Positions 1-22,300 of a stretch of 64,000 nucleotides of DNA are shown one piece after another. The notes under the pieces were generated by a model. That model searched no databases and was not told the origin of the DNA. It saw only the letters and a program-made list of their open reading frames with translations. Position numbers and translations under genes: made by a program. The first letter of the stretch is position 1, and every line of letters starts with the position of its first letter. The stretch comes from Paragordius varius (taxonomy: Eukaryota > Animalia > Nematomorpha): the NCBI GenBank assembly GCA_964247055.1, contig OZ176050.1:1860001-1924000 (forward strand), written 5' to 3'.

Positions 1-1789
1 TAACAACTGTTATTAATTTGAAGTAGACTATTTTAACAGTCAATTAAATATAAAACATATAAATTAATTTAATAATTAATTAATAAAAATATTTACAGAT
101 TAGCGGCTATGATATTTATAGGAATGTTCAATTATGAAAAATGGCTATCAAATGATAGAATACGAACAAAACAATATAAATACTCGTGAACATTAACCAA
201 AAACAATATTGATCAAAATTATTATTTAAAGTACAAAATCTATTTTTATAAGCAAACATTTATAATTTATACCCATAATTCTACTTTAAATTCCATAAAC
301 ATAAAAGCCCAATTTAATTGTTTATCCGACAATTACGAGATTGTTAATTTCGATAAATTACTTAATTAGATTTATGATAAAAGGTCAACCATAAATAATT
401 ATCAGATAATCTTTTTTAGCAGGGGTGTAAAACATATGACCCTCCATTTCTAGAGCCCGTGAAAAGTAAAACACAAAATTATACGAAATCTAGGTGTAAT
501 ATAAATTTCCAATTATTAAATTAATTTTTCCGAACTCGGAAATGAACAAACAAAAATTAAAATAAATAGTAGATTTTACAGTATATTTGTAATATAATAT
601 ATGTTAGTGCCCATTTGAGAAAATTTTAATCCTAAATATCTTGATAAGGCGAATATAAAGTTTATACAATTTCAAGCTATATTCAAAAATATTTTATAAA
701 CTACAGCAAAATTAATATTTGTATATAGATTAGCGTTCGGTTTTTGAATCAAAATTAGATAAAATGAACATTATAAAAATAAGTAAAATTTATGTATAGA
801 AATTGATTTCATTCAATTTATTATATAAACATTGTTAAAATACTATATCAAATAATATATTTAACTAAAAGGATTTGATCAGTAAAAAAATATTCGACTT
901 TTCGGTCTGAATACTTCAAAATCAAAATAGCTATTAGACATCTCTTAACAATAAAATATTATAGATATACTCAATACTTAAAAATATAATTATTGCGATT
1001 TTATTGTCCTTTAAAAGCTAAATATGTTGTCCGAACATACATTCAAAAATATATTAAAAAAATCTACATTTCAAATCTTCAGCCAGGTTCTTAGGTTTTG
1101 CAAAATGGCCGAAAAGTCAATAACACTTATTTATATATATATACATATAAATAAAATGTCAGTAGCAAATCATGAAATTATTTTAGCTTCGAATTTACGT
1201 TTTAGCGAAATTTCATTTAGTTTACGAACAATATGTTATTTGAATTTTACTAATTGAATATAAAATTTATAAAAAAATTATGCTTGCAATAAAAATATTC
1301 TGCCTATATTTTATATAATATGCTTTTAAATTACCAATAGGCCCAAGAATTTGATAAAAAAGTTAGGAAATTTAAGAAATGATGAAATTCTATTAAAATA
1401 TAAAAAACAACTATTCAAATTAGGCAAATAATAATATAAAGCGAAAAAAAAATAAATGTTCAATGTTTATAAACCAAACTAATTTGCATGTTAAGAAAAT
1501 ATACGGCTTTAATAGTCAAGAGAGTTCATATCATTTTGGTTGTTAAACGGCTAAAAAATTATTTAATTTATAAGTCTATTACATCATGTACGATATTATT
1601 CATTTCTCATTTAATTAAATTTAAATTGTGGATAAAATGTACAAGAATTTAAAAATACATATAAACAATTCAGATTAAATTAATATCTAATATATACCAA
1701 GGATACATCTTTTAAATTTTATTAACATAACTATTTTTTATTTTATCAACAAGAATAAATAAATTATAAAAACTAATTTTTTCACTTAA

Positions 1790-3684
1790 CACTTCAATTC
1801 AATTTGGGGTATCTAAATACCCCAGATTAAATTTGAATTAATATTTTAAAAAAACTACTGAAGAAAACGGCCCCAATTTAAATTTATGCTTCTATACCAT
1901 TTTTCATGCAAAAACATCATTTTTTCAACCAAATGCAACATTTTTTCAACCAAACTCAACATTTTTTCAAGCAAACGCAACATTTTTTCAAGCAAAGACA
2001 ACATTTTTTCGAGCAAACGCAACATTTTTTCAAGCAAAGACAACAATTTTTCATCCAAACGCAACATTTTTTCAAGCAAACGCAACATTTTTTCAACCAA
2101 ATACAACATTTTTTCATCCAAACGCAACATTTTTTCAACCAACGACAACATTTTTTCAAGCAAAAACAACAATTTTTTTAAAATAAAAAACCATTTTTTT
2201 ATTTTTAGACATATTAATTTTAAAGTTAATGTAAATTAATTTTAGCGTAGAATTATGATTATTATTGTTTTATCATCAATATTTGATGGTATGATTGATT
2301 TTCAAACATTTTAATTGAGCCCATAAATTGCATTATTTATTTGTATTAATTATTTTTTTCTTTTACAACTTTAGTTTTACCTAATCAATCTATACTGCGC
2401 TTCAAGATTGTTCTTTATTTAAAGTTAGCCCTAGTACACTATAAGTTGGTCCTTCAATATTTTAATTTTGATTCTAACGTTTATTAATGTAGAAAATATT
2501 CATTATTCAATCATTTAAACCTATTTTTTTATTTAACCTATACCTTTAAGTGAATACATTTCTTTCATAAGAACCGTATATCCTTATTATTTTCTATAAA
2601 TTAATATTAAAAATATCTACGTGTGGGTTATTAATGGTAATATTTGGTTTAAAACAATAATAAATTTACAATATTGATGAAAAGAAAATTTTAAAACAAA
2701 GTTGTTTTACTATGATAATATTAATTTTGATTCAAAAAATAAATAGAGAAAAAAATAGATAATTACACACAAAAATAACGGTTTATAAAAACTGCAAAAA
2801 ATGTAAGGAATTTTAGGCGAAGGATATCTTTTAATTTTTAAAGAGAGTCTTAAAGCGCAAATTGTATTGATTGATGAAAAAAAATATTTTTAAATAAATA
2901 ATGCAATTTATGGGAATTAAAATGTTTGAAAATCAATCATACCATCAAATATTGATGATAAAACAATAATAATCATAATTCTACGCTAAAATTAATTTAC
3001 ATTAACTTTAAATTTAATATATCTAAAAATATGGTTTTTTATTTTAAAAAAATTGTTGTTTTTGCTTGAAAAAATGTTGTCGTTGGTCGAAAAAATGTTG
3101 CGTTTGGATGAAAAAATGTTGTATTTGGTTGAAAAAATGTTGCGTTTGCATGAAAAAATGTTGCGTTTGGATGAAAAATTGTTGTCTTTGCTTGAAAAAA
3201 TGTTGCGTTTGCTCGAAAAAATGTTGTCTTTGCTTGAAAAAATGTTGCGTTTGCTTGAAAAAATGTTGAGTTTGGTTGAAAAAATGTTGCATTTGGTTGA
3301 AAAAATGATGTTTTTGCATGAAAAATGGTATATCTAAATGAAAATTATATATATGTGCCAAAATATCTTGATAAAATTTTGCTTGGAAAAAAAAGTTCCA
3401 TCTCAAATTACTTCGACGCCATTTTTATTTTACAAAATTTTTGCAAAATATGGTCTTCATTTAATTTTAAGGGTAAAACTAGAGCTAATTTTTTATATAA
3501 ATAACATCTAACATTGATAGAAAACAAAAAAGCGGTTTATTTTGTATTATTTCTTAATTTTAGAATTCGACACATATCACGTTGACCAAATTTTTACCTT
3601 TTGGTTTTAGCTTAAAATAAGTAATATCAAGTATATTTGAATAAATATTTTTATATATTTCGGTTTTTTAATGTTATTTAAGTG
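1790..3684. mobile_element. Family E copy interrupted by the family A foldback
   Basis: TTAA|CACTTC start and AAGTG|TTAA end. The sequence on both sides of 1895-3330 is collinear with 20402-20967. Confidence 0.7.
1895..3330. mobile_element. Foldback element, family A (young copy)
   Basis: Starts TACCATTTTTCATGCAAAAAC and ends GTTTTTGCATGAAAAATGGTA. TA is duplicated at 1893-94 and 3331-32. Each arm has ~13 copies of the 21-bp unit GCAACATTTTTTCAAGCAAAC and the arms are nearly identical. The uninterrupted homologous site (CTTCTATCC) is visible in other family-E copies near 20500 and 63700. Confidence 0.9.
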
Positions 3685-16300: not shown

Positions 16301-19300
16301 AATGCAGGAAAAAATTGCGTTTCATATGTGTGCTACGAAATAATTTTGTAAAACAATATTTTAAGCATTTGAAAAACCATTTATGTTATTTGACTGACTA
16401 AAAAATTACTTAACATACATTAAAATGCATACTGTAAATACATTTTTTGAGAGCAACTTTATTTTCAATAAACAATAGATTTTCAAAATTTGAGTTTTTT
16501 ATATTTTACATATAACAAAAACATAACGAGGTTAATTTTTTTAGATAATATTTTTATGGAATTTACTTATAATATTAAAATAATATCTAAAATATATTTG
16601 GAGATAAAAATGAAGTCAATTTAAAAAATAGAACAATTAATTTATGAGCAAAACTACAATGTTCGAAAATCATTCACCATCTAATATTGGTATTAAAACA
16701 ATAAAAACCATAATTCATTGCTAAAAATGATCTAATCATTAATTTAAAAATAGATATTTGATAAAATTAATAAAATAAAAAATGTCTTGAATTTAAAAAT
16801 ATTGCTTTTGCTTGAAAAATATTGTCTTTGGTTAAAAAAATGTTGCGTTTGCTTAAAAATTGTTGTTATAGTATATATATACTTTTAAATGATTTATCTT
16901 TTAATCTGGATGAACAATCAATATTGCTAAACAAAATTACCGTTTAATTGGACGTTTCCGGGTTGGTCTTTATACAGGGCGATTAAATGCTGAGTATCAG
17001 CGTTTTCTTTAAATATCATTTTATGACTAAATATATTAAATTGAAATTTACTTTTCATCCATTAAATCAGTGTTTTGTATTAATGTGAATGTGAATATCT
17101 CGGAGTTTTTGACCTTATTTAGACAATAATCTTCTGTCGCGGCCTCTACACAATATATGCCAGGTTTCAATGCATTTAAGGCAACTGCCTTGGAAAATCG
17201 CTCACATTGTTCAAGTTGTTGTGGTAAAACACACCAAAATACTTGAAGGGGTTCGCATTTTTGTAAGCCTTGCACTACCTCCAAATAATTACCTTTAAAT
17301 TAAATTTAAAAATAACCAAGATATAATTTATAATCCTCTGACGAAGGGCGGATTAATTTTTGTGTCGAATCTTTAAAAAGCAAATTTCCTTTACCGTATT
17401 TCTCAGCACTGTCACCAAACATTTTAAATTCTTTTGAGTTTCTTCCAAACTTCTAAAAATTTAATAATTATTTTATCACTCTATATTTATAAAATATTAG
17501 GCTCTTAAAATATTAAATCAAATTGGTTTAAAAAATCATTATTACAATGTAAGAATCAAATTACCATCGATAATTGATACGAGGTTAGATTTGTTGTTTA
17601 GGCTAAATATACTAAAGACAGAAGGTTATCTATTTAAATCGAAAAATCGCAGTTCATTACATTGAATTGAGTTGAGTTGTTTCTAAGGTCAATTCCTACT
17701 TACTGCACCATTGAATATATAACTTCTCAATTTATTGCGAATACCGGATTTAACGTTAAGTTTGGATAATGATTGGTTGGTATCTTTGAGGATGTTATCC
17801 ATCCAACAATTTCGTTTCTTTCTCTTTTACGACACCCCTCACTTTTCAAGTAAGTTGTTCTCGTAATCAAAAGGATAGTTTTTGCCGTATTAAGCTTCCT
17901 AGTAGTGACATTTCCGGGTTAATTTTATTTAAAATAGTGGCGTTAGAAATTGTCCATTTTATTTGGAAAGTTTCCTATAAACCCATAATTCGAAAGAATT
18001 TATTTGTCGTTCGTCATATTTTTTCAGTGTCCAGCTTTCCTTTCCCCATACAGGAAAGTGGGGAAAACTGTAGCCTTGATTAAGTTTGATGTCATGTGAC
18101 GTCCAAATCTTGTTAAAGTTGAATGTGACTCCCTTAGCGATGGTAATTCTTCGTATTCTTTCTGGAGTAGAGTTGTTGTCATTGCTCATAATGCTGCCCA
18201 AATACGTGTTACTGTTTACTGTTTCAATCTAATTATCGGCGAGGATTATTGAATTAGTTGTTTGAGCCGGGTTGATTTGGATAACTTTTGTTAAGTTCAT
18301 ATTTAATCCGAATTTATTGCATTCAGTTGTGAACACTTGCAAAGCTTGCGATAATGTGTCTACCTTCTCTGCGAATAAGACTGTATCATCCGCGTAATGA
18401 ACGGATGAAATAGGTTTCCACCTAAGCTATGCCATAAGTTTCTGGGATGTTTCCTATTATGCATTCGAGGTATGCGTTAAAAAGAATTGGAATTAGAACA
18501 CATCCTTGGCATAGAGGCCGAGTTGCACCTTACATGAATCAGATATGCGTGAGGTGTAGATACTACAACCATGGAATTTAAGTAAATTGAAAACATGAAG
18601 TTGATTAGATGGGTTAATCCAAGAGGGATGTTTTGCTTTGGAAAAATCAACTAAGCACATGTGCAGTTCTTTGTTAAATTCAATGTGTTTCTCTAGTATC
18701 CACCTCATATTGCATATCATATTTGGCATCATCTACCTTTTTGAAAACCAGACTGAATCGTGAATATCTCGGGGTCAAGAGTGGTATTTAGTCGAAACTA
18801 TATTATTTTTAGGAAAACTTTGGGCACTTTGTTAATGAACGCTATGTTGCGATAGTTGTCGCAAAGTTCTGGATTACCCTTTTTTAAAATAGAAATCATA
18901 ATTGATGTGCACCAATCCTCGGGAATTTTATCATCTTAAATATCTTTGGAATTAATTTGGTAAGTATATCGATTGGGATATATTTTATTATTTTAGTAAG
19001 GGTGTCTCTGTGCCCTCTGATTTGCCTATACTAGAGTATTTTATAGCGTCAACTTTCTTTCATTATAGGTGGGTCTTTCTCTTGAGTAGGTTCGTTGATA
19101 ATATGGGGGTTATTTCTGTTGTATAGTTTATTTATATGTTTAAGCCAGAGTTTGCGGATTTCGTATTTTTCAGTGACGATTGAGTTGTTGTCGTTTCTCA
19201 TAGGTTCCTTTTAAAAAGTTTTTTTATGTGGAATAATATAGTTTGTATGGGAAAAAGGTTTCGGTTATTTTTGGCGTCGATTTCTAATTTTTCACACAGG

Positions 19301-22300
19301 ATGTCGCAATATTTTTTTCCACTTTTGCACTCTTTTAAAAACTGTTGAAATGTTTGTATTCATCCCATTTGCATTTTATTTTGGATTCTCTAAGTTTTTC
19401 TGCGATCTCAAGACTTTTTTTTGACAATTTTATTTTTTGTTTAGTATGTTTGAGTTGAGAGGATGTATAAATTCGTCGGCTGTATCTCTGCAGATTGTGT
19501 ATATAGCGTTCCAAAAGAATTTTATATTGTTAACGAAATGACCAAGCATAAAATTAACATACTCGGAATTTAAGAATCACACATTCCCTCTACCGGAATT
19601 TATAATTTGACAATCAAATAATGTATTACTCTGGCCATAACTGGTTAAGGTCGGTATAATAATGAATAAAAAGCTAGCTATAATTTATCTGACATTTTTA
19701 ATCAATGAACGTATAAATACAATCCGCATACAATCAATTACAATCATTCAAATTTAGGCCCCTTCCTTCACTTACAGCGATGACGACTATGAAAAATTTT
19801 CCAATGATCTTGACTTGGAGATTTCCCACTTATGCCGGGTGGTATGGGGTTGGGCATAAAAAACTAGAGAGGAGATAGATTGATTGAAATTTTGACCATC
19901 GTTTCTTCGTCTCAAATACATTTTTAAACAACCTAAACAACTTCTCATGGCGTTCCCCGTGTCAAAGATACCATAACCAAATTGAATTCATATTAGATAT
20001 GATTAAATATATAAAAAGTTCATTTCATTACATTAAAAACAATTTTTCAGCCATTCATAATTTTTGCATTTACATATTATTAAGTTATTATTAGTTGTAA
20101 ATTAAAAAGTCAATACATTTTGTTAAAATCCATATTTTCTCGTTTTTATATCCCAGAAATCGTTATTTTTTTACTGCAGTGTCAGTCGGTCATTTATGGC
20201 TTGTAGATAGATTAATCATTACACCCTATTTTATGATTACACTAAAAAATGAATGTTTGATATATCATTTGAATGTAAAACCTTCACGATAATGAATATC
20301 GAAATGATATATGCGGTTTAAATACTAGAAAAAAAATTATTTTAATATTTCTGTTATTAGCCAAAATAAAAAAATCGCAATTTTATCACATATTAGATCA
20401 ACATTTCGATTCAAATTGGGGTATCTAAAAACCCCACGACTAAATTTAAATTAAAATTTTTAAAAAACTACTGAAGGAAACGGTCCCAAAAATTAATGCT
20501 TCTATCCTGATTAATATTATATAAATATGCCAAAATATCTTGATAAAATTTTGTTTTTAAATAAAAGTTCCATCTCAAACTACTTCGACGCCATTTTTAT
20601 TTTACAAAAATTTTGCAAAATATCGTATTTAATTTTAACGGTAAAACTAAAGCTTATTTTTTATATAAATTACATTTAAATTGATAGAAATAGAAAAAGC
20701 GGTTTATTTTGTATTATTTTTTAATTTTACAATTACGACATGTCACGTTGACTAAATTTTTACCTTTCAGTTTTAGCTCAAAATGAGTAATATCAAGTAT
20801 TTTTGAATAAGATTTTTATATGGTTTATATATGTTATAAATGCAAAATCTTGTCATGGTTTCGATTCATTCCATACTTTTTAAAGTATTTGATTTTAAAC
20901 AGGCCTGGGGTATCCAACTACCCCAATTTGAATCGAAGGACTAAAATGAGTGTGTTGTATCCAAGTGTTAAATATAATTAAATACAATTAAAAAACGCGT
21001 CAACTAAATTTTATTTGTTTTATTATATAATGATAATTTTAAAAGCAAAATATTAACATAAAAATTTTACATTTTTCGGAGGTCTTAGAAAGACTTACAA
21101 TATAAGCTAAATCGTTAGGCGCCAATTAAAATCATAGAAACCTAGTAATATGCGGTAAATTTGAATTTTTACAACAATCATATATTTACTCTATACAAAG
21201 ATTTTACCCAATATATCGCCTTCAAAAAATAAGTAGTCTAATATAAAAAAGAAAATACTCAATAATTTGCACCGAAGGGACGTTTCGTATAATTTTTACG
21301 AAACATCAATATATATATTTTAATAGTTTTTTCATACATTTGGATGTAGCTATCATCTCAGTTAATTTAGGACATTTTTTACCCGAAAACATTTATATAT
21401 TTTTAGCGCCATTTTATCTTTACCGACTTTAAGGCGTATAAATTCCTGAAATCAAAAAACCAAGTCATATATCTTTTTTCTGCATCGAATTGTGTTAAAA
21501 GGTAATTATAATATATATATTGAATGTTTTGTGAAAATTATGCGCAGCTTCCGCTTTAGTGCAAATTTTAAAATATTTTTTTTTATTTAAGGCTTAAAAT
21601 ATTTTCGGCGTGTTGGGTAACCTCTATATATATTGTTTTAATAAAAACTAAAATATTTAACATATTAACGAGTTTTATGATCAAATTTGAGGTCAAAGTT
21701 CGATTTCATAGCTTATATCTTGCGAGTTTTTCTAGGACCCTCCAAAAAATATAAAATCTTTATTGATAATATTTAGCTTTTAAAATTATAATGCTATATA
21801 TAATCAAATAAAATTTGGTTTTCGCATTTTCATCTATTTGTTGTATTTAATTATATTTCCAGTATGTGAAAAAAATACGATTTTTTGATTTTGTCAAATG
21901 ATTTAATCATATATAATTCATTTAACCTTTATTATTTACCCCATTTTACCGAACAGTGTTATAACATACCTCCTGTAATTTAAGCATCCATTTTACGATG
22001 TTTTCCTTCTGGCGCCAAGGCATGGACGGAGACACCATGAGAGCGTGAGCCGGTGCCTGATTCCAAAAACAGTTTTCGCTATCATAAATGGAAGCCAAAC
22101 GGCCATCTAAACAAAGTAGACGAAAATCTTGGGCCCGAAACCCCGGTTGAGTCTTATTTTTTGTCATCTCTATTGTGGTAATTCCTTTGGCAAAAGCTAT
22201 ATCACCTTGACCATCTCTCAGGCATTTGAAAGCACCATGATATCCCCAATACGGATCATTAGAATTGCAGAATGAACTTTCTGACCCTCCACATATGGCA

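Follow-up and report, generated by a model that had tools for sequence, protein, structure and literature searches.

Structure consistent with twin priming in a 5'-inverted RTE-like LINE copy, and its recurrence across an invertebrate genome

How does one stretch of genome come to carry the reverse transcriptase (RT) region of a long interspersed nuclear element (LINE) on one strand and, head to head with it, the apurinic/apyrimidinic (AP) endonuclease region on the other? The question is raised by positions 17653-20034 of a 64-kb stretch of Paragordius varius DNA (C1:1860001-1924000, hereafter the window), which is part of a 110.6-Mb assembly in 44 contigs and is strongly AT-rich, with a G+C content of about 26%. 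Our analysis assigns a probability of roughly 0.87 to the reading that this copy would go back to one insertion by an RTE-like LINE in which twin priming took place, i.e., two primings of reverse transcription on the same RNA. In the coordinates of the element family, the inverted piece extends from Y = 699 to X = 1300 and the direct piece begins at Z = 1501. Twin priming is favored because of this order of the pieces (Y < X < Z), the single target-site duplication (TSD) around both of them, the microhomology at X, the closeness of X to Z, and the equal age of the two pieces. A preliminary description of the window had proposed this geometry from the letters alone, and the order of the pieces, with the element-3' end of the inverted piece set against the TSD, bears it out.

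The anatomy of the window copy is listed below. Family (ref) positions refer to L045, a natural full-length copy (C11:415752-420708, reverse complement) which served as coordinate reference. Comparisons were made with natural copies, including those at about 45 other places, and not with a consensus.

17653-17663, no strand: left TSD copy of 11 bp, TTCATTACATT, adjoining the 3' tail of the element
17664-17682, minus strand: decayed, microsatellite-like 3' tail, set against the 3' ends of about 30 family copies
17664-19528, minus strand: sense (direct) part, family 1501-3468, open reading frame (ORF) amino acids 296-942 (linker, RT and C-terminal region)
18232-18426, minus strand: stop-free RT remnant with YADD, matching Pfam RVT_1 (E = 1.8e-6)
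19527-19534, no strand: inversion junction, the sense part reaching 19528 and the inverted part starting at 19529 with GTTAAC
19529-20028, plus strand: inverted part, family 699-1300, ORF amino acids 28-232, nearly the whole AP-endonuclease domain
19828-19831, plus strand: site of an internal 72-bp deletion, ref 1025-1096 being absent relative to other family copies
20024-20034, no strand: right TSD copy, whose first 5 nt (TTCAT, 20024-20028) match the element too

In the direction of the direct part, the unit thus runs from one TSD through the antisense segment (X = 1300 to Y = 699) and the sense segment (Z = 1501 to the tail) to the second TSD. The inverted part lies with its element-5' end at the junction and its element-3' end at the outer TSD. 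The opposite strands of the two parts, already noted in the preliminary description, were confirmed by BLASTN and TBLASTN against L045. With the reverse complement as reference, BLASTN aligned window positions 17653-19527 on the minus strand with ref 3480-1501 and, on the plus strand, 19529-19828 with ref 699-1024 and 19831-20027 with ref 1097-1300. TBLASTN with the 944-amino-acid ORF of L045 placed amino acids 28-232 (endonuclease) on the plus strand and 296-942 on the minus strand. Six-frame translation of the sequence between the TSDs gave RT motifs, including YADD, on the minus strand and N-terminal AP-type endonuclease motifs on the plus strand, both broken by stops and frameshifts.

The copy is old. 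Stops and frameshifts are numerous in its sense part, which shows 79.5% identity to L045 with gaps counted, and the overall decay amounts to about 11-15% substitutions plus many insertions and deletions. When the short stop-free pieces of the window were searched against Pfam, the YADD piece alone matched, with no match for the four others. Absent from the copy are ref 1301-1500, the 200 bp between X and Z, and the first 273 bp of the element. With its ORF start absent and its endonuclease inverted, the copy was dead on arrival, and it is a decayed fossil without function.

Within the 64-kb window, TTCATTACATT occurs exactly twice, at 17653-17663 and 20024-20034, as expected from the earlier claim of one 11-bp TSD around the whole unit. 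On the element strand, this TSD opens with A. Its length supports twin priming, since it fits both the 8-12 bp typical of the family and the mode of 10-12 bp of the RTE clade (PMC6007223). Exact direct repeats of at least 11 nt were found in 0.08% of 20,000 random pairs of 25-nt windows placed 1.5-2.8 kb apart. At the outer junction, most family copies read ...GTTCATTTCATAATG..., and the window reads ...GTTCATTTCATTACATT.... Most family copies therefore carry TTCAT at this point, and positions 20024-20028 fit the element as well as the TSD, so that only 6 nt of the right TSD copy are unambiguously flank. These five shared bases would represent the microhomology at the internal priming site. 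The 3' flank of L045 itself resembles the window TSD, and we considered whether the repeat might be element sequence; this was ruled out, as flanks after (CAA)n were unrelated among about 30 copies.

The inner junction departs in one detail from the first description. The palindrome GTTAAC does lie at 19529-19534, and nearly all family copies have it at the corresponding position of the endonuclease region. Its proposed role as microhomology available to both pieces did not hold. GTTAAC belongs to the endonuclease piece only: it is missing upstream of position 1501 in every family copy, the closest of which have ...CACAATAT... there, and the ambiguity at the junction is at most 2 nt.

Genome searches with either window piece returned many copies at 72-84% identity, and the family comprises more than 170 candidate copies. 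The open frame of L045 spans 968 codons, in which Pfam recognizes Exo_endo_phos (36-243) and RVT_1 (537-783) and no other domain, RNase H included. In many copies, the element runs from ref 425-426 to about 3468, which sets its length at 3.04 kb; the ATG is at 615, after a short 5' untranslated region. The comparison of about 30 copies placed the 3' end of the family at GACCTTAGCAA, followed by (CAA)n and then by flanks that differ between copies. TSD lengths range from 8 to 12 bp among eight non-inverted copies and from 8 to 11 bp among five inverted ones, including that of the window. The nearest database proteins, from mites, rotifers, flukes and insects, measure about 1000 amino acids and share 43% identity across 99% of the length. 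They lie on contigs of about 3.0-3.6 kb, and several bear the names craniofacial development protein 2 or endonuclease-reverse transcriptase. Similarity of the family ORF to human L1 ORF2p reaches only E = 1.9e-28, on par with R2 proteins. The single ORF joining AP-type endonuclease (APE) and RT, the length of about 3 kb, the (CAA)n tail, the TSD lengths and the names of the nearest relatives make a well-supported case, short of formal proof, for an RTE-like LINE, as the preliminary description had it. The L1 clade was considered and ruled out by the single ORF, the (CAA)n tail and the 8-12-bp TSDs.

Two further features of the family were noted. Six full-length copies (L032, L035, L038, L040, L054 and L055) have 4-18 nt of filler, neither TSD nor element, between the 5' TSD and ref 426; the outer end of inverted copies mostly lacks the filler found in full-length ones. 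In addition, C6:1540418 and C6:1565395, and likewise C7:8665983 and C7:8691635, are pairs of family copies of identical structure about 25 kb apart, which indicates segmental duplications carrying the elements along.

Whether the two window pieces belong together was assessed by comparing each of them with other copies. Both have the same nearest copy, L041, with substitution-only identities of 0.897 and 0.889. Across the 22 copies that hold both regions, the identities of the two pieces are correlated (r = 0.76), with ranges of 0.85-0.90 and 0.84-0.89. The shared nearest copy and the equal ranges therefore place the pieces in the same subfamily and at the same age, which does not amount to literally the same molecule. 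The possibility raised earlier that the parts come from different LINE families was thereby checked, and both belong to one family and one subfamily.

The search for inverted copies elsewhere in the genome, also suggested at the outset, uncovered nine further family copies in which an inverted 5' segment is followed by the direct remainder, i.e., ten copies with that of the window. Seven of the nine were found among 45 distinct places fetched with both pieces, and two were recognized from coordinates and strands in the segment searches. The ten copies are as follows.

Window copy, C1:1877653: X 1300, Z 1501, X minus Z -200, TSD 11 bp
L061, C10:1495685: X 2132, Z 2122, X minus Z +11, TSD uninformative, inside a (TA)n run
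L046, C11:603921: X 1170, Z 1147, X minus Z +24, no TSD found
L042, C5:7780586: X 1668, Z 1592, X minus Z +77, TSD 10 bp
L058, C1:12570751: X 769, Z 751, X minus Z +19, TSD 8 bp (10/11)
L050, C5:10392413: X 768, Z 783, X minus Z -14, TSD 10 bp
L003/L063, C4:11306854: X 824, Z 768, X minus Z +57, TSD 8-10 bp
L014/L064, C10:2178567: X 1156, Z 729, X minus Z +428, 3' end decayed
Copy known by coordinates only, C1:5439077-5440822: X 2299, Z 2263, X minus Z +37
Copy known by coordinates only, C7:2709383-2710808: X 2837, Z 2812, X minus Z +26

The difference between X and Z lies between +11 and +77 in seven of the ten copies, and its absolute value is at most 77 nt in eight. Such proximity would be very unlikely for unrelated neighboring insertions of a 3-kb element. 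Clear TSDs of 8-10 bp surround four of the other inverted copies (L042, L050, L058 and L003/L063), and in every inverted copy the two parts are similarly identical to the reference (e.g., 95.4% and 97.1%, 89.9% and 90.0%, or 96.8% and 97.1%). In L050 and L058, the inverted segment reaches the 5' end of the element (426) and is joined to the direct part via a short A run. A census of the best 40 hits to the last 568 bp, reduced to 38 events by removal of two segmental duplicates, counted 5 inverted, 16 full-length and 9 plainly truncated insertions, the remaining 8 being short or unclassifiable. The figure for inverted copies is a lower bound from a biased sample (best 40 hits), judged partly by coordinates only.

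Several observations accompany this series. The A runs at the inversion junctions of L050 (C5:10392413-10395366) and L058 (C1:12570751-12573681) are 5 and 9 nt long. These two copies are independent insertions with different TSDs and flanks, and their internal priming points lie 1-2 nt apart (ref 768 and 769); Z of L003 is also 768. The region around ref 768 may be a priming hot spot on the RNA. At L013 (C5:6147804-6151129), a 3' fragment on the plus strand (ref 3168-3460, with tail) adjoins the 5' end of a long minus-strand copy that extends as far as ref 459. Should the long copy run on to about ref 3160, the locus would represent twin priming from a point very near the 3' end. Finally, TBLASTN located at L062:3639-5126 (C1:6514000-6523000) a different RTE-like family, with 28-34% amino acid identity to the reference ORF, which repeats the arrangement of the window copy: endonuclease amino acids 60-219 lie on the minus strand just upstream of RT amino acids 454-701 on the plus strand.

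Under twin priming, the window copy would have formed in the following manner. The endonuclease of the element would nick the plus strand between ...ACATT and AAAAA, and the 3' end of this strand would serve as primer on the microsatellite tail of the RNA, yielding a first complementary DNA (cDNA) that corresponds to the present minus-strand part. A second nick on the other strand, 11 nt off, would free a 3' end (...AATGAA) able to pair over about 5 nt with UUCAU in the same RNA, at family position ~1300. Priming from this point would generate a second cDNA toward the 5' end of the RNA that halts at 699, with the first cDNA halting at 1501. The two cDNAs would then be joined with little or no microhomology, at the cost of the 200 nt between them (1301-1500), leaving the endonuclease segment inverted and the 11-bp overhang converted into the TSD.

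Other routes to the same arrangement have to be weighed against this one. One of them, two independent head-to-head insertions with subsequent truncation of one and a chance 11-bp repeat, can draw on an abundant family (more than 170 candidate copies) and on the existence of unrelated adjacent pairs such as L023, in which a 3' fragment lies beside a long copy without the twin-priming order. We regard it as highly improbable. The plus-strand piece has neither 3' end nor tail, and ordinary target-primed reverse transcription could therefore not alone have produced it; moreover, the two pieces share subfamily and age and are separated by 0-1 nt, and a repeat of at least 11 nt arose by chance at the frequency given above even before its placement at the boundaries is required. 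An assembly artifact that fused two copies is given equally little credence. Repeats are where assemblers err, but the window copy is only about 80% identical to every other copy, which leaves no near-identical repeat to confuse the assembler. Besides, a matching TSD encloses the junction, and the assembly is highly contiguous.

Explanations that start from a single insertion fare slightly better, and both are still unlikely. RT might have switched template, with the first cDNA stopping at 1501 and jumping to an antisense family transcript or another nucleic acid. Such a jump predicts the same inverted-then-direct order and is compatible with an inner junction nearly devoid of microhomology and with the A runs in L050 and L058. 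It does not predict the closeness of X and Z in eight of the ten copies, nor the TTCAT common to the target site and the outer end of the inverted piece, and we consider it an improbable source of the copy. A shade less probable still is an ordinary 5'-truncated insertion (699-3468) that later underwent inversion of its first 600 bp and a 200-bp deletion. The final sequence would be identical and the copy is old enough for such a rearrangement, but this requires one breakpoint to coincide exactly with the border between element and TSD, and at least nine other copies to have undergone the same terminal inversion on their own, every one of them bounded by its own TSD or outer limit. Snap-back or hairpin self-priming was also considered and is ruled out, given that the inverted part is not a copy of junction-adjacent sequence.

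Twin priming, the preferred reading, has to bear several points that weigh against it. The process is inferred from structure and was not observed, and the structure of the window copy is known from the assembly alone. No paralogous empty site was found in the assembly, where the left flank is unique and the right flank likewise over about 200 bp, beyond which it runs into a short repeat. Five of the 11 bases of the right TSD are possibly element-derived, which reduces the independent flank match to 6 nt, for which we estimate from base composition a chance probability on the order of 1%. Only 0-2 nt (19529-19530) are shared at the inner junction, varying with the family copy taken as source, and no other of the ten copies has lost as much between X and Z as these 200 nt.

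The short repeat just right of the insertion (20244-20401), probably a short non-autonomous element, is about 160 bp long; across the genome it has at least 285 candidates, and 39 further copies were scored as 78-87% identical.

Twin priming is known from 5'-inverted L1 elements of human, chimpanzee and mouse (Ostertag and Kazazian 2001, as related in PMC2912911 and PMC4245944). The window copy shares with them an inverted 5' and a direct 3' segment of one element within one TSD, an internal priming site with microhomology to the target, minor loss or duplication of sequence at the point of inversion, and a product that is dead on arrival. Microhomology between the target and the internal priming site extends over 2-5 bp in about 70% of 5'-inverted L1s and is missing in only 4.6% (PMC2912911). 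Frequencies are of the same order, as about 30% of recent L1 insertions are 5'-inverted (PMC2912911) versus 5 of 38 events in the family studied here. Unlike L1, this family has a single ORF, a length of 3 kb, (CAA)n instead of poly(A), and TSDs of 8-12 rather than about 15 bp, in an AT-rich invertebrate host. These features recall RTE-1, BovB and their relatives, which likewise combine a single APE and RT ORF of about 950-1000 amino acids, a length of about 3 kb, a (CAA)n 3' end, and TSDs of about 10-12 bp often starting with A. RTE-clade TSDs are mostly 7-15 bp long, with a mode of 10-12, and those of animal RTEs with (CAA)n tails are often A-initial (PMC6007223).

The preliminary description had also supposed that 5' inversion of this kind is novel for invertebrate RTE-type elements, and this stands in part. 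No description of 5' inversion or twin priming for RTE elements was found in the searchable literature, where absence is no proof that none exists; in papers on twin priming that involve RTE, BovB, insects or arthropods, the term appeared only in reference lists or tied to L1. The mechanism is already known, and the window copy is not singular, given the nine others; what is new is the invertebrate RTE-like setting. The only comparison of 5' inversion across LINE clades found in that literature is a cell-culture study in which, bar one Nimb-2_DR insert, inversions occurred only with human L1 in human cells, and which concluded that they depend on LINE species and host (PMC4245944). Its authors proposed that second priming depends on a 3' overhang of sufficient length for pairing with the RNA. 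Zebrafish ZfL2-1, with 5-bp TSDs, gave no inversions, and Nimb-2_DR, with TSDs of about 12 bp, gave one (PMC4245944). The 8-12-bp TSDs of the present family are compatible with this proposal. Those assays recorded de novo events in cultured vertebrate cells, whereas the copies described here are genomic fossils in an invertebrate.

To conclude, the evidence tilts, with some reserve, toward 5' inversion by twin priming being a regular outcome of RTE retrotransposition in this genome, accounting for at least about 13% of events and occurring in at least two RTE-like families. It would hence be no peculiarity of L1 or of mammalian host factors, and would follow from a second nick that leaves an overhang of about 8-12 nt, able to base-pair with the RNA. 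Twin priming would explain head-to-head endonuclease and RT fragments of one family, and in genome annotation each such pair should be counted as one event. So far, the process has been characterized in mammalian L1 and hardly anywhere else. The TSD-bounded, 5'-inverted RTE copies of this genome offer a natural data set on whether second priming is general to APE-type LINEs, whether overhang length governs it, and how far the two cDNAs overlap. The value of the window copy lies in its membership of this series, which points to regular 5' inversion in an invertebrate RTE-like LINE.

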